DNA from: Chlorokybus atmophyticus
Lineage: Eukaryota; Plantae; Mesostigma and Chlorokybus algae
Reading direction: 5' to 3'
Assembly: GCA_009103225.1 (NCBI GenBank)
Contig: RHPI01003491.1
Location: 403,292 to 467,291 of the forward strand
Length of the DNA stretch: 64,000 nt
Positions 2,484 to 59,803 of this stretch are shown here, piece after piece (position 1 is the stretch's first letter; each line of letters begins with the position of its first letter). Made by a program: the position numbers and the translations under genes. A model generated the notes under the pieces. That model was not told the origin of the DNA. It ran no database searches and worked only from the letters and a program-made list of their open reading frames with translations.

Positions 2484-3229
2484 TAGCGTAGCGGGCGCAT
2501 GCACATGGCTGTGTGGACAGTGGCACTGTGATGATCCATGGGTGGGCTTGTAATCCCCTGGAGACTGAGGAGGTGCCATGCATGCCTCAGTCATTGCAAG
2601 ATGGCAATCGCCCGTGCTGCTGTGCAGACACAAGACAGCTAGACGAATGTATCACATGGGATCACAACGATACAAGGGTCCATACAGCACTGCACTGCAC
2701 CACAACTAGGGCTTGCGTAGCAGTCGAGCTGCGCAACGCCGCTGACTACGCTGCAACAAGCGCTGCATGCATAGCCAGTGATACAAATCAGCGTCACGTG
2801 CCGACATGCCACGTGATGACAGCAGCGCCAAGGCGAAGCATGCCGCGGCAACAACACCGCCGCCCAGCTTAGGCAAGGGGGCAATTGACGCTCACGGACT
2901 ACACTCGGATACCCTTGCAAATGGTTCTGGTACGATTGCTTGCTTTGTAACGCCAAAAAATACCATCGTTTGATGCATAAGAGGCTTAAAGGAACGGGGC
3001 AAGTATACATAAAACCTGGCTCATCTATGTACTCAGCAGAGATAAAGTCGTAAGTTGTAGTGCATAATGTGCCTACGTTCTGCAGAGATACCATTTATCA
3101 AGTAGACGATGGTGCATGTCATGTACACCATAGCACACATGTACACTTCGTGCATACTACTGTGATAATTTGTCTTTACATTAATGCTAGGTGACTTCAC
3201 CATACTTGTGTTGCAGTTGTGGCACGATG

Positions 3230-9920: not shown

Positions 9921-10559
9921 GCGGCCTTTCCCCCTGCTACAAGTGGGACTTCCGCACCCCAACCTGGATGTGCGAGGCATCGTTGTCTGCAATCAGCGCT
10001 TGTGTCTTCTACTGTGCCATATATATCCGAACCAATCTATATTGACTGGTTGAATATTGTTGTGCATAGGGTCAGAGTGACCCTGGCTCGCATATGCATG
10101 TTTGCATATGCAACTCTTGGACGATTGAGATCATTGTGCATTGGGACAGCTGGCGTCATATATAACATGACATATACAAGTGTGTGCAAGGTATGCAAGG
10201 TAGTATGTTACAATGTAGCCAATAAGCAAGCGTTGAGAATCCTAGCAAGTGCTGTTCTGCATGGTACATACTTGTAATGGTGTAGCTTTCACAAATTTAT
10301 GCGGCCCATTATGTATTGTGACTCCTGTATGTGTGCTCGTATATATACGCGGTAGTTTATTGATGATTGGGTTGTCGTGTCGTCCAAGGCAGGTTGAGGA
10401 TGACTGATCCGAGTAGCTATAGAAACGGACGTGTGTTGTGGACATGCTACTTGTAGCGCACGTTAGCATGTCAACAAAAGTAAAATATAATTCTACTTCG
10501 AGGATGCTGGTAATCTCTGACCAAGCCTACTCACAACTAAAGGCATACGCCGTACAGAG

Positions 10560-12249: not shown

Positions 12250-12706
12250 NNNNNNNNNNNNNNNNNNNNNNNNNNNNNNNNNNNNNNNNNNNNNNNNNNN
12301 NNNNNNNNNNNNNNNNNNNNNNNNNNNNNNNNNNNNNNNNNNNNNNNNNNNNNNNNNNNNNNNNNNNNNNNNNNNNNNNNNNNNNNNNNNNNNNNNNNNN
12401 NNNNNNNNNNNNNNNNNNNNNNNNNNNNNNNNNNNNNNNNNNNNNNNNNNNNNNNNNNNNNNNNNNNNNNNNNNNNNNNNNNNNNNNNNNNNNNNNNNNN
12501 NNNNNNNNNNNNNNNNNNNNNNNNNNNNNNNNNNNNNNNNNNNNNNNNNNNNNNNNNNNNNNNNNNNNNNNNNNNNNNNNNNNNNNNNNNNNNNNNNNNN
12601 NNNNNNNNNNNNNNNNNNNNNNNNNNNNNNNNNNNNNNNNNNNNNNNNNNNNNNNNNNNNNNNNNNNNNNNNNNNNNNNNNNNNNNNNNNNNNNNNNNNN
12701 NNNNNN

Positions 12707-12742
<36 letters not shown>
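12220..12742. repeat. (AT)n microsatellite on both sides of an assembly gap
   Basis: TATATA tracts at 12220-12249 and 12707-12742. Confidence 0.95.
12250..12706. other. Assembly gap (N run)
   Basis: 457 N. Confidence 1.
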
Positions 12743-12745
<3 letters not shown>

Positions 12746-13929
12746 ATGCAACCATGTATGCAAGACAGCACTACTCAGTCTCTAGTACAATCGTCACAGC
12801 ATGGGATGTTTCAAGTCCTTCCCCTCAGAGCATGCCCCCAAAGACACCCGTGCAGAAGCTTGTGCCAGTGCATGCGTGTGTTGTGGCTTGCCAGTATATG
12901 TAATCACTGCTTGTCACACCGCACTGTCATTAGGTTGAGTTGCACTTCATTGCTTGCAGTAACTGCTACAAGCACAATAATTGCCTGTAGTGATTATTAC
13001 AAGCGCAGTGATTGCCTACTAGTGATTGCGACGAACTTGCTAATCACTGATTTCACTACCCGATACTGGCCATCCCTGCGACTCGCCCATGTATCATTAG
13101 CTATACGCCAAGTCCGTAAGTCCCAACTTCGGATGTAGCTAACCTCTCCCTCTGTCTCAGTGCTGGAGGTTGGGACTTGTTCAAGACAGTTTAGAGGTAA
13201 GATTATGACATACTGATCTCACACTTGGAAAGTCCCAACAACCCCCCCTTTGCCTCAGTGTTGAAGATTGGGACCGTGCCTGGGACAAGCTTGAGTCAGG
13301 ACATGTGGTGGGCCCACTCAGACTTGATTCAGCTTGGCAACACTCAAGATCCACTTTTTCCTGTTTTCGGACTGATTTGGATTCTGTTTTGAATTTTAGC
13401 CGACGTACAGTCATTGTGACCGTGTCGTTGAACCCGATCCTTTAATGATATTCTCACCATCCCATTTTGTCTGTTTTGCAGACAAATGGAGGAAAAGCTC
13501 AATGCTCACCTCAAAGGAGGAGGGCTCAAGAAAAGAGCCACTTCCTTGTGAGGATGAGTCTCAACCCATGGAGGATATACCAAATCCTGATGATGACACC
13601 TGATGCGTCTCAAGCTACCAAAGCTTTGAATGATTCGGTTGACCCAGCAGGCCATTGCCATCATTTTTTGAGGTTTTTATTCGTATGACAAAGCAGGAGT
13701 TAATGGACCACTTTCTTGGCACCTATAACATGGAACTTCCAGGTTGAACCTCGTGAGGCGACTCTCTGGTGAACTTCATCTTCCAGATTGCAGAAATGGT
13801 CTGCATCCTCACCATGCTTTAAGGGGCGAGATTAAGCGGCACAAATGAATGAAAACACCGTGTTGTGGACATAAATGAGCGCCTTCAACGTACTGACGGC
13901 GCACTACTTGTTTAGGCCCTCGTTCGTCC

Positions 13930-39439: not shown

Positions 39440-41200
39440 GTCTCTCCAATGCGGCTTAGCCCAAGCTTACTTGCAAGTACTGCAAGAAGATGGGCCACGT
39501 CGAGGCCAAGTGCTATTCGAAGGAGAACGCACAAAAGGCCAAGCAGCAAAAGAACAGGAAATAGGAATGGTCCATGGTTGGTAACATAATCGAGCAGAAC
39601 GATAAAAACTCTGTACCCTTTATATAAAGTCTCCTTGCTTTGTGACGTCACACATGAACTGGTATGAGCACACTACCACTGTTAGCTAACACAGATGTTT
39701 TGTTTTTTTTGCAACGTACCATTTTTTAAGCTGATAATTGCTATCAAGCAATTATACGAGTTGCAAATACAACACGCTATCGGTGCATGTGTGTATCCCT
39801 TGATACCATTGCACGTGGTCACGATTGTAAAAAGGGGTAGAAGCTGTCATGCAACTCGCACGCAAAGATACAAGAACTTCACCATAACAGGTGATCTTTG
39901 TCAAGCCTGCTACTAATTACGGCACTCCGACAATAGCTATAGGTAATGGTCATTTGGTACCGCTCACATTGAGATTTAAGAGTCCACTTATGGGCATACC
40001 ATGTACAGCATTCATTGATACTGGTGCGAACCATAACGTTATGTGACATGCTTGGGTGAAATGTTATAACATACCGGTTATATCAGTCACGGCATATGCA
40101 CATGCTGCTAGTTCCACTTGTAATGCAATAGAAGAGTTATATGAGTTCATGAAGCGCATGAAATGCGCGCCCGTGAACTCAAGAACTCGTTAATGAGTTA
40201 TCAGACTCTTGTGCCCCAAGTGCCTTAGGCACTTGGGGGCACAAGCACTCACCAGATGTGAGTTGTGAGTCACAAGCTCCTTATCTAGTCGCTTGAAACC
40301 CTAGCGCGGCGGCGCCATCCTTGGCGAGGGTGGAGAGTGTGGTATACTTTGCAGGTGTACATGCTTCTCAAGCTTCAACCTCGGCATCGGCAGCAGTGGC
40401 GCCATCAACGAGTCGAGGACCGAAGCGCGCGACATTCGCACCTGACGTGAAGGAGTAGTTTTCGTAGTTGTAGCCTAGCGCCCTAGTGCAGACTTGTGTA
40501 TAGCTCAGCCTACATCTGTACACTTGTACATTTGTATCGTAATGCACTTGGGTGCTGGGCATAGCCACCGTGCTATCGACCCATGGCGACCCCCCAGCAT
40601 AAGCTGTGTGTCGCATATAACTCGTGTGTGAGTTAAAAGGGCGTTTTGTTTATAACGGCCATAAAACCCGACCAACCTTCATGGTATTAAATAGTGGTAT
40701 TCGCGGGGTGGGTGTTGTTTACAAGAACAATGGCACACTTAAGCAGGTTTGCAATTGGACTCTCGTGCCAATACATGCACCTTTCGTAAGGGTAAATGGA
40801 AGATGACTTTGACTGACTTTTCAGTTGAACATGTTGTTCGCAATAATGTTTTTTCCGCTCCTCTTTGCTAGGCACCTAAAATGTTGCATGCGCAAACGTG
40901 AAGAGGTGTATTTATTGCACTTACGACAGGTGGAAACACCTGCTGAACACGTTGTGAATGACCTTATAGTGCAATCACTTACGGAACAATATGCGGATAT
41001 ATTTCAGAATGAACTCGGACTTGCTACCTAATAGAAACATACACTATACCATTTATGAGAGGAAGGGTCAAAGTCACCGGCCTATATAGAGGCTAAGTCC
41101 ATCTATTTGGACACGCGGAAATAGGAATACAGCTCAAAAGTTGTTGAGTAAAGGTCTAATAACAAAGAGCATATGTTAAAGGTACTTTGCTAGGCGCCTT
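39440..41200 (+). mobile_element. Degenerate gypsy relic (gag knuckle, protease, RT start), interrupted by a solo DIRS unit
   Basis: CKYCKKMGHVEAKC and IDTGANHN motifs; colinear with 62,900-64,000. Confidence 0.8.
40139..40634 (+). mobile_element. Solo A-U-B unit of the split-direct-repeat DIRS family
   Basis: Matches A (52874-53078), U (58068-58299) and B (58300-58361); no ORFs; no TSD. Confidence 0.9.
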
Positions 41201-42860
41201 AGCTAAACTTCTACAATCATCTTCGCCTTGACAGACTTATGATCGACTGTCTTTATGGCAGGTTCAGTCCACTATGATCAACATTGACTTTGATCTTTAA
41301 GTTTAACTAGTGTGGACTTTTACCAGGGTTGACTAGTGTTAATTAGCATTCACTGGTGTACTATATCAGACACTGTATGTTGTGCAACGCAATAAGATCC
41401 ACTCTGCTCTACTTGTCAATGGCACACTGGTGCGTGTGCATCGTTGCTACTGTGCAATCTCAACAGGTTATGGGTCACACTAGCGCCAGCATAGCACACA
41501 CGAATTTGTGTAGCTTTGGGAAGCGCCGTCTTCATTGCGGACTTGTAAGGGAAGCATGGCGACCAGCTATGACAAGGTCAACATGGAGCCACTGGACCTC
41601 GACAACCATGGGATATGAAGCATCCGGATGCAGATGCTAGTCATGCATCAAGACCTATAATCGGTGGTGGATCTCAAAGAGAGCGCTCCCGACATGGCGG
41701 ACGCAGACCTCAAGAAGAAATCAAACCAGGCACTTGCTTTGTTAGGATTGAATGTTGTACATCATCACTTCGCGCTTGTTGCACATTGCAAGACTGCTAG
41801 AGAGTTGTGGCAAGAGTTTGCAGATGTATAAGGCTTAGAACAATGTTAAGAAGTTGCACTTAAAGAAATAGTTGAATGCGTTAAGAAAGATGTTGCTGAG
41901 CCTGTCCACAAGTTCATCTCGCGAGCTATGCAGCTGTGGGCTGACCTCCTCGCCATTGGCCATAAAGTGAAGGAGGTGGAGGTTGTTTGCGCTATTCTCG
42001 CCGGCCTAGCCAAGAAGTTCGAGATAACTGTCACCATTATGGAGTCATCATGTGAGGAGCTCACCCTTGAAGCTGTTACCCAACGCCTATTGCAAGTCGA
42101 GCAACGGGCATTCACTTCACGCCATGCTGTAGCCGAAGCTATGGCATTCGTTACACACTCCAACCCACGAGGCAACTACAACAATGGTGGAGGAGCAGCA
42201 GACAGAAACGCGCACTTGCCACTAGTATAACACGAAAAGGCATCTAAAGATGGACTGCAAACAGTTGAAGCGCGATTAGCAACAATGATAAAGTTTTGAT
42301 AGGCAGGCTATAGCACTTGTTGCAAGCAGCACTGCCATCGAGAGCGCTTGGTTGTTCAATTCTGCGTGCACACAACATATGACCCCACACAGACATGAGT
42401 TCCGGAATTATCATGCTCCAAGCAATGCTGCTGGTGTGAATGTGAGCTTTGGCAACAAGCTACACTCGAGAGCTGTGGGAGTAGGCACCGTCATCCTACT
42501 CATTGTGGTGGCGGGTACTACACATGAATTGGCCCTGAAGGAGGTAATCCATGTGCCGGGAGTAGCCTCCATCCTGTTCTCTGTTTGAAGAGCTACAAGT
42601 GCAGGCGCCGAGGTTGACTTCACTGCCAAGGGGGGTCGAGTCATATGAGTTCATGAAGCGCATGAAATGCGCGCCCATGAACTCAAGAACTCATTAATGA
42701 GTTATGAGACTCTTGTGCCTCGGGCACTAGGGGGCACAAGCACTCACTAGGCGTGAGTGTGAGCCACAAGCTCCTTATCTAGTCGCTTGAAACCCTAGCA
42801 CGGCGGCGCCATCCTTGGCGAGGGTGGCGAGTGTGGTGAGGGGGAAGGGGGACCTTCACC

Positions 42861-44381
42861 ATGGACAAGAGGTTGACGCGGGCGCAAGCAAGCGCCCAAG
42901 GGCAAGGCGAGGACGTGGGCAAGCCTCGGCGGCGGCGGCTCTCATGGCCTCCAACCGCTTGGCAAAGGCGAGAAGTCCGCGTCGCCAGACCTTGAGTGAG
43001 GAGGAGGAGAGGCGAGCGGAGAGTGAGGAGAAAAGAAAGCACCCCCCCGTGGTGGATGGGAAGGAGGTGAACAAGGATGGTGATGGTGATGGTGATGGTG
43101 ATGGTCATGGCGATGGTGATGATGAGGATGATCATGACGACGACGACCCGCCCGCGGTCACTTACAAGCGTAGAAAGAGGGCGGCAAGCCCGGTTTCCAA
43201 TGCCTCTACCACACCCACGGAGGCCATGGCGAGGAGGTTGGAGGAGTTGGAAGCGGAAAACATCCGCCTCAAGCGTGGAAAAGCGCCCGCCATCCCTCTT
43301 GATGAGCCCATGGACGAGCCCAACCATCCACTACTTGTGAGCATCCTTCGCCGCGAGAGCGACTCCAACACTCCTAATGCTCGGGTGGCGGCGATGTGCA
43401 ACCGCTACACCGAGCCCGCGACCCCTTGGAAGGAGAACTTGAAGAAGCGGGCTCGGCAACATGTGGATGTGGCGGCTCACATCGGCGCGGCGGCGAGCTC
43501 CTTCGACCGTGTGCCCGCTCACTTTCTCAACAATCTTCACTTCGCTCATGGTCGCCGGGAGAACATGAAAGGTGGGCTCATTCTTTGCAGCGTCATGTGC
43601 ACGAGCGTCCATACAAACATCATCATGTGGGTGCGGACTTGGTCCAGGCCCACTTGCACATGCGTGCGCTATGGGCCTTAAAGGCGCTTCCCCTGGTCAA
43701 CATAGATGCACGAGATGCATTTGTTCCGCATTTCTTCTCCCCCCATGTCCGGCGGGGGGGGAGGGCCCGCACTTAACACCTTTGCATGCTCACCCCTGTA
43801 TTCACATTATGACTACCTCACAGCAAGGTAACAAGCACAACAGGGCACATCATATGCATCCGCATCCGCAGGGCATGTGGTAGGTACAGTTGAGGGTGGG
43901 ATGTGGGTGCGCTTGGCGCTGGACCTTATGGCTTTGAGCCAGTGTGCTGATGCAACTCGTGTTGCTTACATGTGCTTTGTGCGCAGCGTTTGAGGAGGTA
44001 TTCAAACAGTTTCACTACTTAGAAGTAGCCAACAAACACAACTGGAAAGTGGTGGAGGAGCTCGAGGGACATCCTCTGGCCGCGGATGACGCCGAGGCGA
44101 AGCGCCTTAAGAAGGCAATCAAGGAGGCGGCTGCGGCGCAGCCCAAGCCCAAGGCAAAGCCTGCCTACACTCCTAACAAGGGGCGGGGCCAGTACCCCCC
44201 TCGCTACTCTGGGTCCTACGCATCTGGTGCGGGGAACACCAGCTACAGGACCGCTCCCATGCAATCTCAGGCCGCTTCTACAGGGGGCCAGCGTGACACC
44301 CGCACCTGTTACAACTGTGGGGAGCCTGGGCACCTGCGTGCCTATTGCCGTAAGGCCTCCACTGACCGTGGGGGCCGGTAG
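42861..44381 (+). CDS. DIRS gag with a predicted spliceosomal intron (43572-43986)
   Basis: Probable ATG caccATGG at 42861, with a frameshift near 42920. Donor AAAG|gtgggc and acceptor gcgcag|CG join ENMK-AFEEVFKQFH in frame. Ends with CYNCGEPGHLRAYC and TAG. Confidence 0.8.
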
Positions 44382-44897
44382 AACAGCTTTGTAGCTGATG
44401 TGACAGCCCCGTAGCTGTACACTTGCACTCGTTGATGCTGTAGCCCGGTGGGGCATCTTTTTGTGTTCGCGATTGCTATATTAGTGAATGAAACTGCGAG
44501 CGTGGTGAATGAAAGTGGAAGTTTGGTGGTTTAAACTTGGCGAAATCACCATTTTGCTTGTAACTTTGTTTTGTGGTCTCAGAACACCCCTAACTGGGAG
44601 ACACTCTGGGATCATTACAATGAGGCGGAGAGGCTTAGATCAATCAAATCAGAATCGGTTTCTGACACTGTTTGCGCCTGTTATGGCTAATTGGTGATGC
44701 TAAGGGCTTTGGGCCCTTGAACGCCATTGAACATCAATGCTACTCGGTGGTTGCCTTTATGAGCACTAGAGCTTTGCAATGAGCCCGTCCTCATGGCATT
44801 TGGACAGTATATGCAATAGTTGTGGCGGTTTAGGTGTTGCAATGTGCACACGCAGGTATGCTAGGAGTGCATCCATAGTAACACCAGTTGTCTACAG

Positions 44898-46879
44898 GGG
44901 CGTACACTAGCACGGAAGCGGAACTTGTGCACGACTGGATGAAGCATCATGAGTTTGCGCGTGTGCCTGCAAACCTCACCGTTGAGGGACCTTACATGCG
45001 TCATCGATTGCGTAATGCTCTTCCTGCATGGCGCGCGTTCTGCGAGTCTACTATGGTCTTGTCTTGGGTGGAGTATGGCTACAAACTACCGTGGGCTCAA
45101 GACCCACCGCCAGAATGGGCGTTCACCAACCATAAGGGGGTACACGAGTTTGCGGACTTCACTGCAGCGGCCATTGCCAACTTGGTTCATAGTGGGGCTG
45201 CACAAGAGTGTGTCACGCCCCCCCTCGTGGTGAGCCCACTCAATGTGGTGGATGATGGGCGCAAGCTACGCCTCATTATGGACCTGCGCTATGTCAACTC
45301 CTACTTGGTGAACACGCCGTTCAAGTATGAAGATGTGCGCAGCATCCCAGACTTGCTGCAACCCGAGGACTGGTTGTTCTCCACGGACTTGAAGTCTGGA
45401 TACCACCATGTGGACATTCACCCCGCCTTTTGGGGCTATCTGGGGTTCTCATTTGCGGGCAAAGTGTACAACTTTTGCTCGCTGCCATTTAGGTTGAGCA
45501 CGGCGTGCTTTGTATTCACCAAAGTGATGAAGCAGTTGGTGAGGCGCTGGCGTGTGCAAGGCATCCGTGTATTGCCCTACATTGATGCCTTCCTCTTTGC
45601 TGCTCGTTCACGGGCAGCACATGCTTCCACCCTGGCTGTGGTGCAAGCAGACGCAGCGTGGTGCGGGTTAGTAATCAACACTAAGGCACAGACTGTGCTT
45701 AGCAGAGTCATCATCTTCCTCGGCTTTGTGTGGGATACACATGCTGGCACCATTTGTGTCCCTGGCAAGAAGCGGGATGGTTTGCTCAGAGACTTGCAGC
45801 GCGCCTTTCGAGATACGCGCCATGTGCCGGTGAAGTTGCTAGCCCGCATCTGTGGCAAGCTGCAATCCATGTTCCTAGTGTTGGGTCCTGCCGTCAAACT
45901 CATGACTTGGTATACACGCCGATTGATTGAGACCCGCCGCTCATGGAGCTCTCACTTGGTGCTTCGCCAATCAGAGATCAAGGGGTTGACGTGGCTGCGA
46001 GAACACTTTGAGGAGCTCAACACGGTACCCATTTGGCCTACAGTGCAGCCGGACATTGTGCAGTTTGTGGATGCTAGCGGCACCGGTTGGGGACTAGTGC
46101 GCCATGGCACAGCTACCCCGGTGGCGAGAGGCACATTCACACCCGACGAGTGCTTGACTTCATCGACATACCGCGAGCTGTTGGGACTCGAGCGTGCCCT
46201 GCTCACCGTGGAAGAGGAGCTACATGGACGCACAGTGCTATGCTATGGGGATGCCCGCAATGTGTATTACATTATGCGCAAAGGGGGCAGTGAGGCCGAG
46301 CACTTGCAGCAAGTGGCATGCCGTATCTTCTTGCATTGCCATCGGCATCGCATCCGCTTGCATGTTGAGTGGTTGCCACGTGAGTTGAATGAGGAGGCGG
46401 ATGCACTTTCCAAGGCACCAGACTCGAATGGTTGGACCCTGCAAACCCCATGGGTCCGCTTGCTTGCCTGCAAGTGGGGCCCATTTGATGTGGACCGCTT
46501 CGCCACGGATGCCAACACTCTGTGTCTGGCCTTCAACTCCGTGTTGCCTTGTCCGGGCTCATCCGGTAATGCTTTTCATTGCGATTGGAGTGGTTGCAAC
46601 AACTGGTGCCACCCCCCTCCGCACCGTGTTGGCATTGTCCTGCGTCATGCTCGCGAATGCAAGGCCCGCATGTGCCTCATTGTGCCCGAATGGACAACTC
46701 AGCCTTGGTGGCCCGTGCTTCGCCCGCGTGGCGTGTGGGCGCCTTTTGTCACAGACGTGGTGGCCTTACCCTATGGCCCGGCTTGCTTATGGCCAGGCCC
46801 ACAAGTCACTGAGCTGCAAGGGGGCCTTACCAACAGTCGCATGTGGGCTTTGCAAGTCGACTTTTGTCCTAGCCACTGA
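44898..46879 (+). CDS. DIRS RT - RNase H - adenine-methyltransferase-like (MT) ORF
   Basis: VVSPLNVV, DLRYVN, DLKSGYHH, LPF.LS.A, YIDA (YIDD mutated), FVDASGTGWG, RELLG, YGDARNV, NEEADALSK; MT region DVDRFATDAN...NAFHCDW...WCHPP...LIVPEWTTQPWW. Confidence 0.92.
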
Positions 46880-46895
46880 CATACAGTATGTGCAG

Positions 46896-47510
46896 CTGCT
46901 ATCGAGCGTAGCCTGCAGGCACTCATGCCCGACGTACCTGGGGACTTCAAGATTGCACGCTTGCGCAGCCTATATCCAACGGTGGCAGCAGCCTCTCGTG
47001 CGGATAGCACTCTGCGGGGCCACGAGCCCTACTGGTGTCACTTTGTCGAGTTCTGCACGCCTCGTGGTTGGACAACTCTCCCGGCAGACCCAGGCACGGT
47101 CGCCCTGTTCTTAACCAAGGTGTTGGTGGAGGCCACTACCCCGGCACCTGTGAGACATGCCTCAGCGGCAATACATGCCATGCATACCATGACGGGACAA
47201 ACCTCTCCCACTGCGCATGCACTTGTGGCAGTGGTGCGTGAGGCCGCAGCAAGGCTGCTCACCGCTGGCACTCGCAAAAAGGAACCCTTCACCCCGGCCC
47301 TGCTCGAGCGCATGATCTCGCACTTTGCCCGCAACGGGTGGGACTTGGTGGCGCGGCTGCAAACCGTGGCTGTGCTCTTGCTATATGCAGGGATGCTGCG
47401 GTACTCCGACCTTGCGGCTATCCTCTGGCAAAGCATTATCTTCCGTTCAGACCGCATGGACCTTGTGATCCCACGCAGCAAGACGGACCAGCATGGTGCG
47501 GGTGCAATCT
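46896..47510 (+). pseudogene. DIRS tyrosine recombinase, C-terminal half deleted
   Basis: YWCHFVEFC N-domain, GMLRYSDL (catalytic Arg), IPRSKTDQHG (Lys), then a direct jump to repeat B. The HxxR and Tyr motifs seen in copy 2 (~430 bp) are missing. Confidence 0.9.
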
Positions 47511-49214
47511 ATCGACCCTTGCGACCCCCCAGCATGAGCTGTGTGTGTCGCATATAACTCGTGTGTGAGTTAAGGTGAACAACATTGTTGTTGCAGAAGG
47601 CACATTGCGGGAGAGTATGCACTGCATCACAATGGAACTGCAGCATGCGTTGTCTGCGACAGTCACTGCATCGGCTATAGCTCATCTTTGGCATCGAAGA
47701 GTAGGACATCATGGGTGGGACAACCTGGCAAAACTAGTTGCTGAGGACATGGTGGGAGGGATTGACATTAAGGAGAAAGACATCAAGGCAGCAAAAGGTG
47801 ATCTGTGCGAGGTGTGAAGTTAGATGCCTAGGCAGCCTTTTCCTACTTATACCCGTATCACTTTAGCACCCTTGCAGCTTGTGCACATGGACATGTGCGG
47901 TCCCATGCCAGTCACATCTATTGCAGGAACTGGGTACATTGCCACTCATCTAGATGACTTCAACAAGTTGTCAGCAATTATTCCAGTTGCTGCCAAGTCG
48001 GATGTTGCTGCTGTTGCGAAGAAGACGCTCACCTTTTTTACAACACAATCAAAGACAAGGGGATTTGTGTTGAGGAGTGATAGGGGTTCCAAGTATCTTT
48101 ACAAAACCTTGGAGAGCTATTTGGAGGAGCACGGCATCAAGCATGAGACCACGGCACCTTACACACCTAAGCAAAATAGTATTGCCAAGCGCCTCAACAA
48201 CACACTTGTGGAGCGTGTGCGTGCCATGCTTACTCATGCAAAGCTTGAAAAAGCCTTATGGGCTGAGGCGTTTGAGACGACCAGTTACATTCGCAACAAG
48301 TCACCTACGAGCAACAAAGCTAAGACATCGTGGGAGTTGTTCTATGGGGAGAAGCCTAACATGACGCACATGCGTGTGTTTGGAGCCAAGGCGTATTCAC
48401 ACATCCCCAAGCACCTGAGGAGAAAGCTCGAGAACGTGAGGGCGACAGGTGTCTTCGTTGGGCACGAGCCCAACTATGAGGCATCTAGGATCTTGCTCGA
48501 GGGCGGCAAGATTGTGGTTGGAAGGGGTTATCTTCAACAAAAAGACAGTGACGATGTTAACAACATCTTCAACACCAATAGAGAATGACATCGCAGAACC
48601 TGAGGTTAGCATTGCATCTTTGAACATGGTTGTTCTCGAGGTGGTTATATATGAAGAGGTTTTCGGCATTGCACAACACCTTGAGGGGAAGAAAGCTACA
48701 CCTTCGGAACAGCCAAATAGGCGCTACCCTGTGAGACATAGGGTGCCACCACACTTCACGCAACGGTTTCTGTCTATGAGCGCTGCAAGTGAAGAGAAAG
48801 AGCCAAGCACCTACCATGAGGCGACTACAGCTCCTGACGCAGAGTTGTGGCGCAAGGCCATGGATGAAGAGATTGCTTCGCTACACGCCAACAAGACTTG
48901 GGTATTTGAGCAGATTCCACAAGGCGTCAAGCCTATACTTGTCAAGTGGGTGTACAAGACAAGTGTGATGGCAAGGGCATCATTGTGCGCTACAAGGCGC
49001 GACGAGCAAAAGGATTCCTTCAACATGAGGGTGTTAACTACAAGGAGGTATTCGCACTTGCTAGCAAGCACACAACCTTTGGGGCACTACTCGCCAAGGT
49101 TTCTGTGGAGGACTTGGAGCTGCACCACCTCAACGTGAAGACCGCCTTTGTCGGAGAGTTGGACGAGCAGATCTTCGTGCAGCAGCCTCGGGGGGTACGA
49201 GGAGGGAAATTGTA

Positions 49215-49658
49215 AATGAGTTTTATGCGTCATACAGCTTATGCTGTGGGTCGATAGCACGGTGGCTACGCCAGCATTCAAGTGCATTACATTACAAATG
49301 CAAGTTTATACATTTAGGCTGACCTATACACAACGTCTGCACTAGGGTGCAAGGCGACAACTACTGCTTCTTCACTCTAGGTGCGAAAGTCATGTGCTTC
49401 ATAGATCTTCGACTTGGCGATGGCGCTGTGGCTGCCGATGCATAGGGTGAAGCCTGAGAAGCCTATACACCTGCAAAGTAAACCACACTCGCCACCCACG
49501 CCAAGGGTGGCGCCGCCGTGCTAGAGTTTTACGCAACTAAATAAGGAGCTTTGACTTACAACTCACTCTATTGAATGCTTGTGCCCCCAAATGCCTAAGG
49601 CAATAGGGGCACAAGTGTCTCATAACTCATTAACGAGTTCTTGAGTTCATGGGCGCTT
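49215..49658 (-). mobile_element. Inverted, diverged solo A-U-B DIRS unit
   Basis: Reverse complement of 40139-40634 with both ends eroded. Confidence 0.85.
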
Positions 49659-49669
49659 GAACGGGGCGT

Positions 49670-50821
49670 GCCCAATAGTCGTATGTGGGCATTCCGGATT
49701 GATTTGCGTCACAGCCATTAAGTCATGCTGAGTGCAGCTGCTATTGACCGTAGCGTATGGTCCTTTATGCCCAACGTCCCCGGAGACCATAAGGTTGAGC
49801 ACCTGCGCACTTTATACCCGGCAGTGGCAGCGGCGTCACGTGCTATTAGCACCCTTTGGGGTCTTTGAGGGCTACCGTTGTAGCTTTATAGAGTTCTGCA
49901 TGCCTTGTGGTTTGGCTGCCTTGCCAGCAAACCCTGGCAAGTGGTCCTATTCCTGACTATTGTGTTGGAGGATTCCACCACCCCAGCACCCATGAAACAT
50001 GCCTCTTCGGTCACACATGTCGCGCGTACTGTGGCAGGCTAGGCCTCTCCCACTGCGCATGCACTCATTGGGGCGGTGCGTGAGGCCGCTGCCAGGTTGC
50101 TACCAATGAACACGCGATAGAAGGATGCCTACACGCCTGAGCTTTTGCAAGCCATGGTCTAGCAATTTACTCCCAATGAGTGGGACTTGGTGGCTAGACT
50201 GCAAGTGGTGGCTGTGCTGCTGCGGTTTGCAGGTATGATGCGATATTCCAACCTGACCAAAGTCAACGCACGGGACATTATCTTTTAACCAGAACGCATG
50301 GATCTCGTCATCCCGCGGAATAAAATCAATTAACATGGTGTGGGCGCGACAGTACACATAGCTGCTGCCGCGGGTAACTTGTGCCCTGTAATGCACACCG
50401 CAAAATTGTTGTGCAGTTTGGGCTGCAAGCAAGCAAAGCCCGGTAAGTTGCTGCGCTCCAGTAAGCGAGTAGGGGGAACGTGCATTATATGCGACACCGT
50501 TGTACCATTTCCCATTGAGAGAAGGCCGCCATCGAGGCGGCGGGGGAGGACCCTACACCTTTTTTGCACAATTCTGCCCATTTGGGCACTGCAACCCAGG
50601 CGGTGCAAGCTAGTGTACCCCAGCACGTGTGGCAAAAATTGCGCGTTGAAAGTTTTCCACTGCAGTTGAGGGCTATGTGCGTGCGGCGTTGCCTAAGTTG
50701 CACACACTTACATGAAGCCTCAGCTTAAGTGGTACGCGCGCATACTGCTTGTATACAGTCAATTGACCCATAGCGACCCCTCAATATGAGGTGTGTGTCG
50801 CATGTACCTCGTGTGTGAGTT
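49670..50821 (+). mobile_element. Third DIRS fragment: MT tail, degenerate YR and repeat B
   Basis: NSRMWAFRIDL, MPNVPGDHKVEHLRTLYP, GMMRYSNL, GEDPT; B-like end at 50760-50821 not followed by A. Confidence 0.85.
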
Positions 50822-51199: not shown

Positions 51200-52873
51200 A
51201 TGTTACATATGAGTTGGTCCAAGCAACAACCCTCTCACCAAAACACGGTACTCACACCGGAACCTTGCCCACTCTGCTAAGTACACTAGTGCACTCAGCC
51301 ACTCGCGTACGCACGCGTATGCGCTGAAGCTATACAGGGTCTTATGTAGTGCCTTGAATCGTCACACAAGCAAGCACACACCAGTGGACACACGCTAGCA
51401 ACTCCAGCTATCTACCACCAGGCTTGCGCACCAAAAACTAAAGAGCTAAAGGTTGTTTTGCACATTATGCTACCACCATGCTACCATGCTACCACCATGC
51501 TACACAAAAGCAGATGCTAAGGTGTTATGCAGAACCTTGTAGTATACTTGACCTTTTTTACGCACTAAAGAGCTCCTGATTAGAATCTATATGGTTAAGT
51601 TATACTACTTGGCGCCAGGCCCTTTCAAAAATCTGGTCGAGCCCTTCTCGATTGGCCCTCTCTTTTTTGGCACCTTCCTGAGGCCCCGGGTAATATCCGC
51701 GGCAAACTCATAACTCGCCAATATTCGCCACAAGTCATGAAAACGTGGTGCTCGACAAAAGGGCCCAAAAAGGTCCTGAAATCATGAAACTTAGCCTCGT
51801 CTGTTACACACCTCCCCCCCTTAAGTGAGCTTCGTCCTCGAAGCTCTCGAGGATTCTTCGATTGTCGTTGCAAATACTGTTGCATGATATGTTGCGCATC
51901 TGCCAAGTGCTCCTCCGGTTCCCAAGTGGCTTCATGCATTGGATAGCCTTTCCACTTCACCAAGTATTTGCGCACGTCGTGCGCCATCTTCTCACCCAAT
52001 ATGTCCTCCACTTTGTATTCCACATAACCTTCCGTAGCCAACTCAGGCCGACGCAATGGTGGGTCTCCTCAATATGCTTGCAGCCGGGATATGTGAAAGA
52101 CAGGGTGGATGTGCATAGAATCGGGCAGTTGCAACTTGTACGCCACGTCCGAAACCACTTTAATGACTTGAAATGGCCCAAGCCAGCGCTTAGTTAACTT
52201 ACTAACTCCAGCACGCATCTATAAATTCTTCGAAGGAAGCAACACCATGTCGCCTTCGCAGAGTGTGACATGTCGGCAATGCGCATTTGCATACTGTTTT
52301 TGCGTATTTTGTGCCTTGAATATTGCCTCTCTCGCTGCCTTGGTGATGTCCGCACACGTTGTAAAACATCGCTTACTGCTTTTACAGCAATGTCACTTCA
52401 TTGCGGGGTCCAATCCGTCAGCAGTGTCAGTGGGTGTTGGTTGTAGTGCATGAAAAAGGGGTGACACCCGTGCTTGCATTTGTGTGGTTGTTGATGGCAA
52501 ATTTCACCACTTCCAGCAACTTCACCCAGTTGTTCTACCGTGCATTCACGAAGCAGTGCAACATATATGCGATCACAAGGTTGGCTCGCTCCGTTTGGCC
52601 ATCAGTTTGCGAGTGGAAAGCCGTGCTAAACTTTGGTAGTACCCAATGCACCATGCAGCGCCTCCCAATATTTACTTGTGAAGCGAGAATCACAATTGCT
52701 CACAATGGTAGTGCGTGGGGACTAATGACATGCTTCATAAACAAGCTTGCTCCCTCCGATGCCGTGCAAGACTCACAATACGGTGCCAAATGTACCATTT
52801 TGCTGGTTTTATCTACGAATACGAGTATTCCGTTGTACGCTTCTGTTGTCTTCAGCGGCCTCCTAATTGAGTC
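51200..52873 (-). mobile_element. Chromodomain-bearing gypsy (chromovirus) relic: integrase, chromodomain, PPT and 3' LTR; its 5' part continues at 58427-59560
   Basis: ILVFVDKTSKMVHLAP; EYKVEDILGEK...KYLVKWKGYPMHEATWEPEEHL; GGGGGGGAGG PPT then TGTAACAG at ~51808. RT (GFHLIKIREQAEHKTAF) and gag knuckle relics at 58.4-59.6 kb. Left LTR boundary uncertain. Confidence 0.82.
51468..51502. repeat. Short tandem repeat (TGCTACCA[CCA])n inside the putative LTR
   Basis: tgctaccaccatgctaccatgctaccaccatgcta. Confidence 0.8.
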
Positions 52874-55800
52874 ATATGAGTTTATGAAGCGCATGAAATG
52901 CGCGCCCATGAACTCAAGAACTCGTTAATGAGTTATGAGACTCTTGTGCCCCTAGTGCCTTGAGCACTTGGGGGCACAAGCACTCACCAGATGTGAGTTG
53001 TGAGTCACAAGCTCCTTATCTAGTCGCTTGAAACCCTAGCGCGGCGGCGCCATCCTTGGCGAGGGTGGCGAGTGTGGTTTGGAGGAAGGATAGGCGGTCG
53101 ACCTTCATGACCACCACACGGTCAAAAAGTGCCCGTGGTGATGGAGAGGACGTGGAAGCCACGGCCAAGGCGGCTAAGCTTGCCGCCAATAGGTTGGCGC
53201 GGGCTACAAGTCCGCGTCGCCACACCTTAATTGAGGAGGAGGAGAGAAGAGCGGCGAGTGAGGAGAGAAGGGTGCGCCCCCCGGTGGAGGTGGGAGAAGA
53301 GGAGGTGAACAAGGAGGGTGATGGTGACAATGACAAGGACGAGGATGATGAGGACCCGCCCGTCGTCACTAACAAGCGTGAAGGGAGGCCAGCCCGCTCT
53401 CCGACGCTTCCACCCCGTCCATGACACCCACGGAGGCCATGGCGAGGAGTTGGAGGCGAAAAACATGCGCCTTAAGCGTGGGAAGGCGCCCGCCATCCCT
53501 CATGATGAGCCCGTTGACGAGCCCAACCACCCGCCACTCATGAGCATCTTTCGCCGCGACACAGGTGACTCCACTACACCCAATGCTCGTGCGGAGGCAT
53601 TGGCCATTCCCTTTAGCGATCCCGCGGTCCCTTGGAAGAAGAACATGATAAAGCGAGCTCGGCAACACATCGATGTGGCGGCTTACATTGCCTCGGCGGC
53701 GGCCTCCTTCGATCGGGTGCCCTCTCACCTCGCCGAGGATCCCCACTTCGGCAAAGGCCGCAAAGAAAACATGAAAGGTGGGCTCATTTTTGGTTGAGCA
53801 TGGCCATTTGCCTGAGCACACATGTAGGACGCGCATGAGGGTGCGGACTTTACTCAAGCAAACATGCACATGCGTGCATCATCGGCCTTATGAAGGTGCG
53901 GGCTTGTTATCTACGTAGAGGCATCTACATGAATACATTGTTCCGCATCCCTCCTCCCCCCATGTTCAGTAAGGGGGGGAGGGCCCGCACCTAACACCCT
54001 TGCATGTCCACCTCTGTATTCACATTATGACTATTCATAGCAAGGTAAAAGGCACAACAGGTTTGCAATTACACTTGCATGTGGGAGATGGTGATGTCAA
54101 TGCGGGTGCGCCTGGCGTTAAACCCAATGGCTCTAAGCCTATGCACGAATGCCCGCAACCAGTGTTGCTCACATGTGCTCTGTGCACCAGCATTGGACGA
54201 GGTGTGCACGCAGTTCCACCATATGGAAGTGGCCAACAAGCAGTAGTTGGAAAATGGTGGAGGAGCTTATGAGAGACCCTCTAGCTACGGACGATGCAGA
54301 GGCAAAGCGCCTTAAGAAGGCAATTAAGGAGGCGGCTGCGGCGCAGCCCAAGCCCAAGGCAAAGGCGGCCTACACTCCCAACAAGGGGCGGGGTCAGTAC
54401 CCCCCCACCCGCTACTCTAGATTTTATGCATCTGGCGCGGGGCATACTAGTTACAAGACCGCTCCTGTGCAGTCTTAGGCCGCATCTATGGGGGGCCAGC
54501 GTGATGCCCGCACCTGTGACAACTATGGGGAGACGGGGCACTTGCGTGCCTATTGCCATAAGCCCTCAGCAGGCCGTGGCGGCCACTAGTTTGGTAGCGC
54601 AGCTCTATAGCTGTTGTGACAGCATAATAGCTGTACACTTGCACTGTTGATGCTATAGCCCGGTGGGGCACTGTTTTGTGTTCGCAACCGCTGTTTTAGT
54701 AGATTGAATTGCGAGCTGAGTGAATGAAAGTGTCGGAATTGTGATCCACTACTGCAAAAATTGCTATCTTGCTTGTAACTTTTGCTGGGGGTCTCTGAAC
54801 ACCCCCGAATGGACCGACATGTTATGACTATTACAATGAGGCGGATAACGTTGTGCCGAGCAAAACAAGACCCAATGCGGACACTGTTTGCACAAATGGT
54901 GGCCATTTTACGCTTATCATGCCATTAAGGCTCTGGCTAAACTCCGTTGTTGAGATCACTTCGTAGTCGTGTGCAGTATTCTACACTAGCACAGAGGAGG
55001 ACCTTGTTCACGACTGGATCAAGCACCATGAGTTTGCTCGCGTCCCTGCCAACCGCACCGTTGAAGGGCCTTACATGCGTCATCGACTGCATGATGCCCT
55101 GCCAGCATGGCGTGAATTTTGTGAATCTACTATGGTGCTCTCATGGGTGGAGTACGGGTACAAGCTACCATGGGCGGCTGACCCACCCCCCGAATGGGCA
55201 TTCACTAAGCATAAGGGTGTGCATGAGTTTGCGGACTTCACTGTAGCTGCCATTGCCAACCTAGTGCATAGTGGGGCCGCACAAGAGTGTGTGACACCCC
55301 CCGGCGTGGTGAGCCCACTCAATGTGGTCGATGGTGGTCGCAAGTTGCGCCTCATCATGGACTTGCGCTATGTCAACTCCTATATGGTGAACACGCCGTT
55401 TAAGTATGAGGATGTACGCAGGATCCCGGACTTGCTGCAACCTGAGGACTGGTTGTTCTCTACGGACTTGAAGTCCGGCTATCATCATGTGGACATCCAC
55501 CCCGCCTTTTGGGGCTACTTGGGGTTCTCAATTGCGAGCAAAGTATTTAACTTTTGCTCATTGCCATTTGGGTTGGGCACGGCTTGCTTCGTGTTCACAA
55601 AGATTATGAAGCAATTGGTGCGCCGTTGGCGTGGTCAGGTCAACATACCGCATCATACCCGCAAGTCTCAGCAGCACCGTCACCGTTTGCAACCTGACCA
55701 CCAAGTCCCACCCGTCGCGAGCAAAGTGCGAGACCATGGCTCGCAAGAGCTCGGGTGTGTAGGCGCCCTTCTTCTGTGTGTTGCAAGGGCAGCAGCCAAG

Positions 55801-58361
55801 CAGCGGCCTCACGAACCACCGCAACGAGTGCATGCGCAGTGGGAGAGGTCTGGGCTGCATGGCATGCGCAGCATGTATGGCCAAAGAGGCATGTTTCACA
55901 GGTGCCGGGGTGGTTAAATCCACCATCATCTTGGTCAAGAACAGGGCCACTATGCCAGGGTCTGCTGCCAGGGCAGCCCAACCACGAGGCGTGCAGAACT
56001 CCACAAAGCGACGCCAGTAGCCCTCATGGCCCCGCAGGGTGCTAGTAGCACGTGACGCTGCTGCCACTTCTGGGTATAAGGTGTGCATGCGCTAAATCTC
56101 GTAGTCTCCGGGGACGTTGGGCATGAGCGACTGTAAGCTTCGCTTAATAGCAGCTGCACACATCACGTGTCAATGGCCAGGATGCAAGTCAACCCGCAAT
56201 GCCCACATATGACTGTTGGGCAAGCCCCCGTGAAGTTCTGTGACTTGCGGGCTAGGCGACAAGCAGGCTGGGCCTCCGGGCAGGCTCACAACGTCTGTGA
56301 CAAATGGTGCCCACACGCCACCCGGGCGGTGCATGGGCCTTTAAATTTGGGTTGTCCATTCAGGTACAATAAGGCACATGCGAGCCTTGCATTCGCGGGC
56401 ATGACGCAGAACAGTGCCAACCTGGTGTGAGGGATGGCACCAGTAGTTGCAACCACTCCAGTCACGGTGAAAGACATCGCCGGATGAGCCCGAACATGGC
56501 AACACCGAGTTGAAGGCCACACACACGGTATTGGCATCCGTGGCGAAGCGGTTTGCATCAAAGGGGCCTCACTTGCGAGCGAGCAAGCGAACCCATGGGG
56601 TTTGCAAGGTCCAAGCGTTCTAATTCGGTGCTTTTGGAGAGCGCGTCCGCCTCCTCATCGAGTTCACGTGGTAACCACTCCACATGCAAGCAGATGCAAT
56701 GCCGGTGGCAATGTAAGAAAATACGGCATGCCACTTGCTGCAAGTGTCCGGCCTCACTGCCCCCTTTGCGCATAGTGCAGTACACATTGCGGGCATCGCC
56801 ATAGCACAGCACCGTGCGTCCATGTAGCTCCTCCTCGTCAGTGAGCAGGGCACGCTCAAGTCCCGATAACTCGCGATGTGTTGATGAAGTCAAGCACTCA
56901 TCAGGTGCGAATGTGCCCTTCGCCACGGAGGTAGCTGTGCCATGGCGCACTAGTCCCCAACCAGTGCCGCTAGCATCCACAAATTGCACTATGTCCGGCT
57001 GCATGGTAGGCCAAATGGGTGCCATGTTAAGCTCCTCAAAGTGGTCTCTTAGCCACGATAACTCCGTGATCTCAGGTTGACGTAGCACCATGTGAGAGCT
57101 CCATGAGCGGCGGGTCTCAATTAAGCGGCGTGTATGCCAAGTCATGAGTTTGACGGCAGGGCTCTACACCATGAACATGGATTGCAATTTGCCACAGATG
57201 CGGGCCAGCAACTTCACTGGCACATGGCGCCTATCACCAAATGCACGTTGCAAGTCTCAAAGCAAACCATCGAGTTTCTCGACGGGGACACAAACAGTGC
57301 CAGCATGTGTATCCCACATAAAGCCGAGGAAGATGATGACTCTGCTCAGCACAATCACCGCGCAGGACGTTTTTCGCCCAGGCCGTATGGATCTCGTCAT
57401 CCCGCGCAGCAAAACCGGTCAACACGGTGTGGGCGCCACAGTGCACATAGCTGCTGTGGGCGGTGACTTATGCCCGGTAATGCACACCGAGAAATTGTTA
57501 TTTGCCTCGGGATATTGGCACTCGGCAAGTTGCTGCGCTCCATCATCCGAGCGGGGGGAACGTGCGTCATACGCAACACTGTGGTGCCATACGGCACTAT
57601 CCTTGGTTGGGAGAAGGTAGCCATTAAGGCGGCAGGGGAGGACCCCACGCGTTTTGGCACACACTCTGCTCGTTCAGGAGCTGCGACCCAAACCGTGAAG
57701 GCTAGTGTGCCCCAACACCTGTGGTAGCAGTTTGGGCATTGAAAGTCTGCCACTGCAGCTGAGGGCTATGTGCGCGCAGCGTTGCCTGAGTTGCACACAC
57801 TGACGAGGAGCCTCATCTTGGGTGGTACGTGCTCTCACTTTTTGTATCCATCTATCGACCCATAGCGACCCCCCAGCATGAGCTGTGTGTCGCATATAAC
57901 TCGTGTGTGAGTTATATGAGTTCATGACACTCTTGTGCCCCTAGTGCCTTGGGCACTTGGGGGCACAAGCACTCGCCAGATGTGAGTTGTGCGTCACAAG
58001 CTCCTGATCTAGTCGCTTAAGATACTAGCGCGGCGGCGCCATCCTTGGCAAGGGTGGCGAGTGTGGTATATTTTTCAGGTGTACAGGCTTCTCAAGCTTC
58101 AACCTCGGCGTCGGCAGCAGTGGCGCCATCAGCGAGTCGAAGACCGAAGAAGCGCGTGACTTTCGCACCTGGCGTGAAGAAGTAGTTCCCGTAGTTGTAG
58201 CCTAGCGCCCTAGTGCAGACTTGTGTATAGATCAGCCTATATCTGTACACTTGTACATTTGTATTGTAATGCACTTGGGTGCTGGGCATAGCCACCGTGC
58301 TATCGACCCATAGCGACCCCTCAGCATGAACTATGTGTCGCATATAACTCGTGTGTGAGTT
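52874..58361 (+). mobile_element. DIRS/PAT-like element copy 2 with complete split direct repeats and an internal inversion
   Basis: A1 52874-53078; B1 57852-57913 abutting A2 57914-58067 (~50-bp deletion); U 58068-58299; B2 58300-58361; extra partial B 58366-58426. Gag, RT and YR are decayed; ~55637-57352 is inverted; YR C-terminus reads THSARSG...GH...EGYV. Confidence 0.92.
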
Positions 58362-59803
58362 TGTAACCACCGTGCTATCAACCCATGGGCATGAGCTATG
58401 TGTCACATATAACTCGTGTGTGAGTTTGTTAAAAAGCTTCTGAAGCTAGCTATGTGGAGCAACTTGAAGCGCAAGTTATGGTTGCGTGTGCTAAATGTAG
58501 TAGCTTTTAGAGTAGAAGCATGTGTAGCTGGCGGGTGTAAAACCCGTGGACATGATGGCAATAGGTGGTCTTGTATGGTCTGCTGACGCTGGTGTTGTGG
58601 CGCGCACTTGTGCATGTGTATGCTTATCATTGTCCATCTCAACGCGCTTAACCCAAAAAGCAGTCTTGTGTTCGGCCTGCTCTCTTATTTTGATTAAATG
58701 GAAACCAGCGAGCAAATTGATGATGGTGAAGACTTTGGCGTCAGCGACGTTATAAACGTTATAAAGATGTCTTCCACAATAGGCACCGAGTACCTAATCA
58801 ATTGAGTGGCTGCATTATCGAGTCCAAAGTCCACACACATGCGCATCTGTGTCTAGTTGCCCTAAAAGTCCTTCTTTCGGGGCATGATTACAGCAAACTC
58901 TTCAATCAACTCAGCTTTCAACAGCTCATCACCCTTCTGCTTCATTGCGTCTTTCTCCACTTGATTGCATGGTATTGTCTTTTTAACATGGGTTCTTCCA
59001 TGTTGCAGCGGCCTAGCTCTTGCAAGTTGAAAGCGAAGGCTTTTCGGTGTCTTTTAAGTTATGCCAGCAGTGTTTCGTTTTCTTGTGCTATGACCTTGCT
59101 TTTGTAGTCCCATGTGTGTGTAGTTTCATCCACACTCTTCTGTGGCAGCCAACATATGTGGCTGGTCACATGAAGTTGACACCCCTTCAGCACCTTGACC
59201 GTGGTCTGGCCGTCTCCACCCCCTCAGCATGTGACTCAAGCTCCGACTGTCAGGTTGCTTGGCTGAGACTAGTGTGCGCGCTTCTTCTGCCACTTTTGGG
59301 GCAGCCGACGACACCGTTAGTAATCCATATCAAGCTACTACAAACTTGAGCGTGGCCGAGCAGCTTTTTTCGCTGCTGTTTTGTTACGCCAGAAGCCTTT
59401 GTAACATCTGGCAAAAAACCCATGACTTTCTCTCTCTCATCGGCAGTGGGTTCCTTCTCCTAACCCGTCTTGTTGTTGTAGATGCCAAGCCCATTGTTGA
59501 GAAGCATAACTGGCAGGGTAAGTAACTAAAATGGGCAATGTCCTCTATGGCTCTCCCACTCCCACACATTAGCAGGGTGTTGTGCTGGCCTATGCATTGT
59601 TAAAACCGGTTGTGGGTCTCGCCCCTCCTCCAGCATGTCACTAACCAATAGTTGACCTGCTCTTTCATATTCTTGCTATACTTGTTTGCGCAGCTCGGTA
59701 GGTGCCAAGTTGGTCAACAACATTCTCAACCGATGTGCGCGCGATTCGCATTGTGCTGCACCTAACTCAACTATACATCCCAACACCGACATCATAATCT
59801 GAT

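Follow-up and report, generated by a model that had tools for sequence, protein, structure and literature searches.

A candidate one-donor, three-acceptor splicing scheme in a PAT-like retrotransposon family of Chlorokybus atmophyticus

How does a retrotransposon translate its reverse transcriptase (RT) and its tyrosine recombinase (YR) when the frames that encode them do not keep a start codon? This question is raised by a family of PAT-like elements of the DIRS order in a stretch of 64,000 nucleotides (nt) of Chlorokybus atmophyticus DNA (contig RHPI01003491.1 of assembly GCA_009103225.1, positions 403,292 to 467,291 of the forward strand), which is called the window here and whose own numbering is used throughout. 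A first-pass annotation of the window had proposed that Gag, RT and YR may all be made by alternative splicing from a single donor within gag onto three in-frame acceptors. Our analysis leaves this three-way scheme plausible, with a probability of roughly one half: the gag intron, the host-like acceptors and the conservation of acceptor position and phase speak for it, whereas the use of the sites and the identity of the donor that would serve RT and YR are things we infer. The sites themselves are present and host-like, coding-type conservation begins directly 3′ of each acceptor, and position and phase are kept in distant relatives.

Under the scheme, the genomic RNA would be kept unspliced and alternative splicing would supply the mRNAs for the proteins. 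In the middle of gag, after position 43571 and in phase 1, a strong 5′ splice site would be joined to one of three phase-1 acceptors. Junction 43986/7 would give full Gag with its zinc knuckle, junction 44897/8 would fuse the N-terminal part of Gag to RT, RNase H and a methyltransferase (MT), and junction 46895/6 would fuse the same part to the tyrosine recombinase. The gag donor would thus be the partner of the RT and YR acceptors as well, and the shared N-terminus could help the three products to co-assemble.

The element and its gag intron

Copy 1 (42638–47572, plus strand) is a defective PAT-like retrotransposon, delimited by blastn of the copies against the window and by the Pfam models RVT_1, Dam-like MT and zf-CCHC. 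Its gene order is Gag with a CCHC knuckle, a 516-nt spacer, a frame for RT, RNase H and a putative Dam-like MT, and a YR frame. Copy 2 (52869–58067, plus strand) is ~84% identical to copy 1 and degenerate, with stops and frameshifts, and fragment 3 (49660–50821, plus strand), also with stops, consists of the end of RT, YR and the 3′ terminus. Copy 1 has a frameshift near 42910 and an internal deletion in YR at ~47500. Since all three are defective, what is said below about expression applies to the family and not to these loci. An internal segment of copy 2 that carries the YR acceptor (55646–57356) is inverted; its breakpoints lie inside RT (copy 1 equivalent 45691) and inside the recombinase (equivalent 47403), and ~135 nt of RT are gone at the left one.

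The termini form split direct repeats (A1...B1-A2-B2), in which the first ~155 nt (52924–53078) are repeated directly past the 3′ end (57911–58067) with 92% identity, and the 3′ terminal ~65 nt are common to all copies. Because of these split direct repeats, the family falls into the PAT-like group of the DIRS order, which comprises retrotransposons with a tyrosine recombinase. Copy 1 RT matches RVT_1 at 7e-12 and RVT_3 weakly, and its best homologs are RTs of the DIRS/PAT type, several of which carry the Dam-like MT domain PF05869. In the window element PF05869 scores 25.5 bits, just below the cut-off of 28.1, and the region aligns along its length with relatives that lie above the cut-off. 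The copy 1 YR, whose catalytic half is deleted, has no Pfam match; for its N-terminal half, blastp finds the YR part of P0067 (1.8e-10) and P0100, and the homologous YR open reading frames (ORFs) of relatives give weak PF00589 matches.

Within gag, exon 1 (42861–43571, plus strand) has a third-position substitution bias and ends on ATG AAA G. An indel of 2 nt near 42910, seen against copy 2, puts its ATG at 42861 in another frame than the remainder of the exon, and the next in-frame ATG is at 42944. The donor, ATG AAA G/GTGGGC (the slash marks the exon end, 43571 in copy 1 and 53777 in copy 2), is in phase 1 of the gag frame. It opens an intron (43572–43986, plus strand) of the form GTGGGC...CTTAC...GCGCAG, with flat substitutions and host-like sites, whose acceptor AG lies at 43985–86 in copy 1 and 54189–90 in copy 2, so that the intron measures 415 and 413 nt, respectively. 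Exon 2 (43987–44381, plus strand) has no ATG upstream of its CCHC knuckle (44307–44348, Pfam zf-CCHC), continues the frame of exon 1 across the intron and ends at the stop TAG (44379–81). Joined, the two exons align with the single-ORF Gag of Klebsormidium-type relatives. The donor, gag acceptors, phases and lengths given for both copies in the first-pass annotation all proved correct on direct reading.

The substitution pattern between copies 1 and 2 tells coding from non-coding sequence along the element. Differences were counted per codon position (first/second/third), segment by segment, and amount to 37/35/63 in gag exon 1, 18/10/40 in gag exon 2 and 17/8/69 in RT. This third-position excess in the exons and in RT indicates that the copies diverged largely under selection. 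The counts are flat in the 415-nt gag intron (38/32/41) and in the gag-RT spacer (30/25/26), where the copies are ~72% identical and indel lengths are not multiples of three; by this measure both segments behave as non-coding sequence. Because the coding-type pattern ends at the donor and restarts at the acceptor, a spliceosomal GT-AG intron of host type in gag is well supported from the sequence.

Host introns in the same window provide the standard for the splice sites. Position matrices were built from 24 introns of SHMT (plus strand, 7.1–9.8 kb) and ARP2 (minus strand, 6.0–3.3 kb), all of which are GT-AG, 60–521 nt long (a range that includes the gag intron) and marked by frequent GTG donors and weak pyrimidine tracts; their acceptors mostly have G at −4 and end in TGCAG. 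Scored leave-one-out, the host acceptors have a median of 7.2 bits and a range of 0.5–14 bits. Against this background the donor AAG/GTGGGC ranks 2nd among the 276 GT sites of copy 1 and within the top 0.8% of the window, and the gag acceptor reaches 5.6 bits (rank 13 of 265). The earlier impression that the element's sites resemble the introns of ARP2 and SHMT is thereby borne out.

Acceptors before the reverse transcriptase and recombinase frames

The spacer between gag and RT (44382–44897, plus strand) has flat codon-position differences and a 137-nt indel between copies 1 and 2, and ends in the candidate RT acceptor, with a branch-like GTAAC and the CAG at 44895–97. The RT-RNase H-MT frame opens at 44882, runs as a putative exon from 44898 to 46879 (plus strand) and closes with TGA at 46877–79. 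The acceptor AG (44896–97 in copy 1, 54975–76 in copy 2) is in phase 1 of the RT frame in both copies, and, as had been noted before, the first RT ATG of copy 1, at 44939, reads ATC in copy 2. Conservation at the protein level begins immediately 3′ of the RT and YR acceptors, and no ATG is kept there. The RT acceptor of copy 2 scores 11.8 bits, the best of the 159 AG sites of that copy. Inside the spacer of copy 1, at 44855–44856, an acceptor-like CGCAG abuts the top-scoring donor of the element, CAG/GTATGC (9.1 bits); such an AG/GT arrangement resembles a recursive splice site, and the segment is missing from copy 2.

The 3′ splice-site region of YR (46874–46895, plus strand) consists of a branch-like CACTGAC that overlies the RT stop, followed by GTGCAG. 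Its AG is found at 46894–95 in copy 1, at 56154–55 on the minus strand in the inverted segment of copy 2 and at 49736–37 in fragment 3, with scores of 6.0, 10.4 and 8.8 bits, respectively. Each of the three is in phase 1 and falls within 13 nt that are identical among them, while the four codons from the RT stop to the AG are variable; the claim that this acceptor recurs in all three copies thus holds. By these scores, the sites ahead of RT and YR resemble host acceptors. The putative YR exon of copy 1 (46896–47500, plus strand) keeps the N-terminal half only, as placed by blastp to the YR part of P0067, since a deletion near 47500 has removed ~390 nt with the catalytic half. In the window family RT and YR share one frame, with the single TGA between them. 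A palindrome, GCAGCTGC, lies in the invariant block at 46892–46899 and is probably incidental to the splice site.

The same sites in Klebsormidium-type relatives

The window family was not found in protein collections, where the best RT match has 45% identity. Its nearest clade is formed by PAT-like elements of Klebsormidium nitens (GCA_000708835.1; ~45% RT identity), namely DF238374.1 (L066), DF237043.1 (L067) and DF237562.1 (L064), together with very similar contigs from ENA, JGI and Logan (L001, L002, L004 and L060–L065). The frames of L001, a long-read contig of 2x depth that contains indel errors, were corrected with the K. nitens record L066. A metagenome scan added distant relatives only. 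The elements of this clade, such as DF238374.1 (KFL_014250010) and DF237043.1 (KFL_000940010), are laid out as in the window, with Gag-CCHC, spacer, RT-RNase H-MT and YR, but their gag is one uninterrupted ORF, as confirmed in the accurate K. nitens record. They share with the window a phase-1 CAG at the starts of RT and YR and a phase-1 G/GT at the homologous gag codon. They differ in that the continuous gag would leave the donor to serve RT and YR only and in that several of them have RT and YR in different frames, while the window family has the extra 415-nt intron and a third acceptor.

At the RT start, the acceptor in the relatives was picked by rule as the last YAG upstream of the conserved block. 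It is a phase-1 CAG in all eight readable elements, 11, 17 or 23 nt from the anchor residue, and is preceded by a CTGAC-like branch motif and by 22 nt that are 64–82% pyrimidine. The conserved RT N-terminus (a block of the type E-S-L-H...E-F-E-G-F) follows immediately 3′ of the CAG. The first in-frame ATG comes 55, 65 or 282 codons downstream in three relatives and does not occur before the end of the frame in one. The YR start likewise has a phase-1 CAG in 5 of 5 readable elements (L066, L004, L065, L067 and L006, the last an unrelated GC-rich element of another clade). Among the elements checked, the YR frames of L001/L066 and L065 have no ATG for ~113 codons, and that of L004 has none before the frame breaks. 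Measured from conserved protein motifs, the window junctions for RT and YR fall within ~2 residues of the Klebsormidium ones, and the idea that AG position and phase would be kept in related algal elements stands for both acceptors.

The donor can be followed in the relatives as well. In a codon alignment of seven of their gag ORFs (32–63% amino acid identity), the sole GT common to all is a phase-1 GAA G/GT, which aligns with the junction codon of the window family and stands 11 residues upstream of a conserved L-E-V/I-A motif on both sides; L001/L066, outside this alignment, have CAA G/GT at the homologous place. GGT makes up 0.37 of the glycine codons in the relatives. Only 5 of the 26 invariant Gag residues keep an invariant codon, and two of these are the glutamate and the glycine of GAA G/GT. 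The simplest explanation for a donor-like motif that is kept at synonymous sites in an intronless gag is a 5′ splice site with another use. The only candidate partners we see for it are the RT and YR acceptors, which fits a donor that would serve both. In Klebsormidium-type elements, Gag would then be translated from unspliced RNA and only RT and YR would be splicing choices. We see a real possibility, a little short of an even chance, that PAT-like elements of early-diverging streptophyte algae (Chlorokybus and Klebsormidium) share an old, conserved splicing programme, in which Pol and YR would be made as fusions to the Gag N-terminus and gag itself would be a third choice in the window family.

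Annotation of K. nitens touches on the same sequences. Several annotated 'genes' on L066, L067 and L064, among them KFL_014250010, KFL_000940010 and proteins named 'reverse transcriptase', are gene models superimposed on PAT-like retrotransposons, and these models link Gag, RT and YR by predicted introns. Made independently, they begin phase-1 exons at exactly the two downstream acceptors, although as predictions and paired with other donors. Four Klebsormidium-type elements also have a motif that resembles a 5′ splice site, GGTAAG or AAGGTCAGT, over or next to the RT stop and 33–55 nt upstream of the YR acceptor (L066, 4618–4625; L004, ~10087–10094; L065, ~10232–10240; L067, ~2995–3005). By analogy, the motif might bind the U1 small nuclear ribonucleoprotein, as described for EVD (PMC5580714).

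Competing explanations and known splicing systems

Several observations weigh against the proposed scheme. In copy 1 the acceptor ahead of RT scores a mediocre 3.8 bits (rank 24 of 265), and the proposed RT and YR introns would measure 1326 and 3324 nt, compared with a maximum of 521 nt among the 24 host introns. Many GTs are in phase 1 (15 of the 28 in gag exon 1, 7 of the 15 in exon 2), so the match in phase between donor and acceptors is weak evidence by itself. With the relatives' Gag N-terminus as query, a search of 1.8 billion cluster representatives returned 22 Gag-sized matches (90–430 amino acids) and no fusion of the Gag N-terminus to RT or YR, and a region search limited to long proteins found only the K. 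nitens gene model itself and no fusion; because such collections hold mostly ORFs called on genomic DNA, the absence of fusions is neither support nor counter-evidence. Finally, AlphaFold predicts an all-helical Gag for the relatives, in which the junction falls within a long helix (160–190, pLDDT mostly 85–95; whole-model mean 68.8) and does not mark the border of a domain. By this model the shared exon is not obviously an independent domain, and the idea that the common N-terminal module of the first-pass annotation is self-contained gains no backing.

The RT and YR acceptors could also be real but supplied by other donors, through sequential splicing from the 3′ end of gag, which would give a full Gag-Pol, or from the end of RT, which would give RT-YR. 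Many relatives outside the clade hold the Gag knuckle and RT in one ORF, which makes full Gag-Pol the ancestral layout, and the window element has a second phase-1 C/GT three codons upstream of the gag stop (44368 in copy 1, 54576 in copy 2; 4.3 bits) that is kept in both copies and, joined to the RT acceptor, would yield just such a fusion. K. nitens gene models pair a late gag donor with the RT acceptor and, in DF237043.1, join RT to YR by a 111-nt phase-1 intron; the GGTAAG-like motif at the RT stop points the same way. However, these models are predictions and not transcripts, the gag 3′ end of Klebsormidium-type elements has no conserved GT, and a further candidate donor in the window, GTAAGG at 44350, reads CATAAG in copy 2. 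The last 300 nt of the window RT offer no usable phase-1 donor. As for the relatives, a short intron from the end of RT to the YR acceptor (30–55 nt) was considered and rejected: it would be shorter than every host intron measured in the window, since the motif lies 33–55 nt from the acceptor and the 24 window introns, which are not Klebsormidium introns, measure at least 60 nt, and it would be out of frame in L066 and L065 and would begin past the stop in L067. We therefore consider other donors unlikely, on balance, to explain the RT and YR acceptors.

If, instead, the gag intron alone were real, RT would start at its own ATG (of the type at 44939, reached by internal initiation or through a subgenomic transcript), synthesis of YR would depend on reading through the TGA or on an ATG just beyond it, and the AGs would be incidental. 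An AG is indeed expected by chance in any stretch of 20–45 nt. The TGA between the window RT and YR is followed by C in copies 1 and 2, which makes readthrough possible in this family; in-frame ATGs stand between the TGA and the YR AG, 4–5 codons upstream of the conserved block, in copy 2 and fragment 3; and the RT ATG of copy 1 is only 12 codons in. The coding signal ahead of the ATG is weak in the window (8 differences, 5 of them at third positions, p ~0.09). Yet neither the position nor the presence of the ATGs is conserved: the two before YR differ in position and copy 1 has none, and in relatives 50 to more than 100 codons pass without one. In L066, L065 and L006 the frame of YR is not that of RT, so that readthrough or frameshifting is not the general route, and readthrough as a general mechanism is ruled out for the relatives. 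In addition, conservation begins right after a host-like CAG, the acceptor is in phase 1 in every element examined, and GTGCAG does not vary among the three copies, unlike the four codons that lead from the stop to the AG. We regard a gag intron with independently started downstream frames as improbable. That the downstream sites are chance features of decayed copies, irrelevant to expression, has hardly any claim on our belief: all three copies are defective and a simple matrix gives many AGs of similar score in copy 1, but position and phase recur in at least eight diverged elements from another algal class, and the donor codon of relatives is conserved at synonymous sites.

Splicing is a familiar means of expression among retroelements, and the three-way scheme can be set beside several known systems. 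The env gene of avian retroviruses is expressed by in-frame splicing onto the opening codons of gag. Retroviruses are like the proposed scheme in that the unspliced RNA is both genome and gag mRNA and that one major 5′ site is joined to alternative 3′ sites for the downstream genes. By comparison, the shared 5′ exon of the window element would hold ~210–240 gag codons, which would give Gag N-terminal fusions, and Gag itself needs splicing; the element also has a tyrosine recombinase instead of an integrase and no env. Foamy viruses, for their Pol, translate a pol mRNA that has been spliced (PMC7828637). In Ty1/Copia elements, alternative splicing produces a subgenomic gag RNA, as in Arabidopsis EVD (PMC5580714) and barley BARE (PMC3735527). 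There too, host splicing sets the ratio of structural to catalytic protein and the genomic RNA is unspliced, but splicing removes pol to leave a Gag-only mRNA, whereas in the window family it would open access to pol and the recombinase. Penelope-like elements keep introns, with alternative isoforms seen by Iso-Seq in Chlamys-3_cRei (PMC8557442). They resemble the window family in having genomic copies with spliceosomal introns; they belong to another order, and their introns, placed in the 5′ untranslated region or an N-terminal extension, make no connection between separate frames for gag, pol and recombinase.

For DIRS-order elements themselves, the literature that we searched holds no account of splicing in DIRS or PAT elements and none of how the RT and recombinase frames are translated; searchable overviews discuss overlapping ORFs and are silent on introns and splicing, neither word occurring in PMC3266345. 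The first-pass annotation, which knew of no published three-way scheme, is in agreement with this. If the scheme is true, retrovirus-style splicing would answer how elements of this order express their downstream frames and would explain frames that lack start codons. Ratios of Gag, Pol and YR could then be set without frameshifting, and the elements would have to shield their genomic RNA from the spliceosome, as retroviruses do. Annotators, for their part, should then treat such frames as exons and not as free-standing ORFs.

The surroundings of the copies show further traces of mobile elements. Directly 3′ of copy 1, at 47575–49215, lie ORFs that, judged from their translation, resemble Copia-type integrases. 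The window also includes an assembly gap of 629 N at 12250–12878. Isolated fragments of the terminal repeats of the PAT-like family occur at 40134–40376, 40573–40636 and 58300–58426, with 83–96% identity to the ends of copy 2, and suggest that more broken or recombined copies lie nearby.

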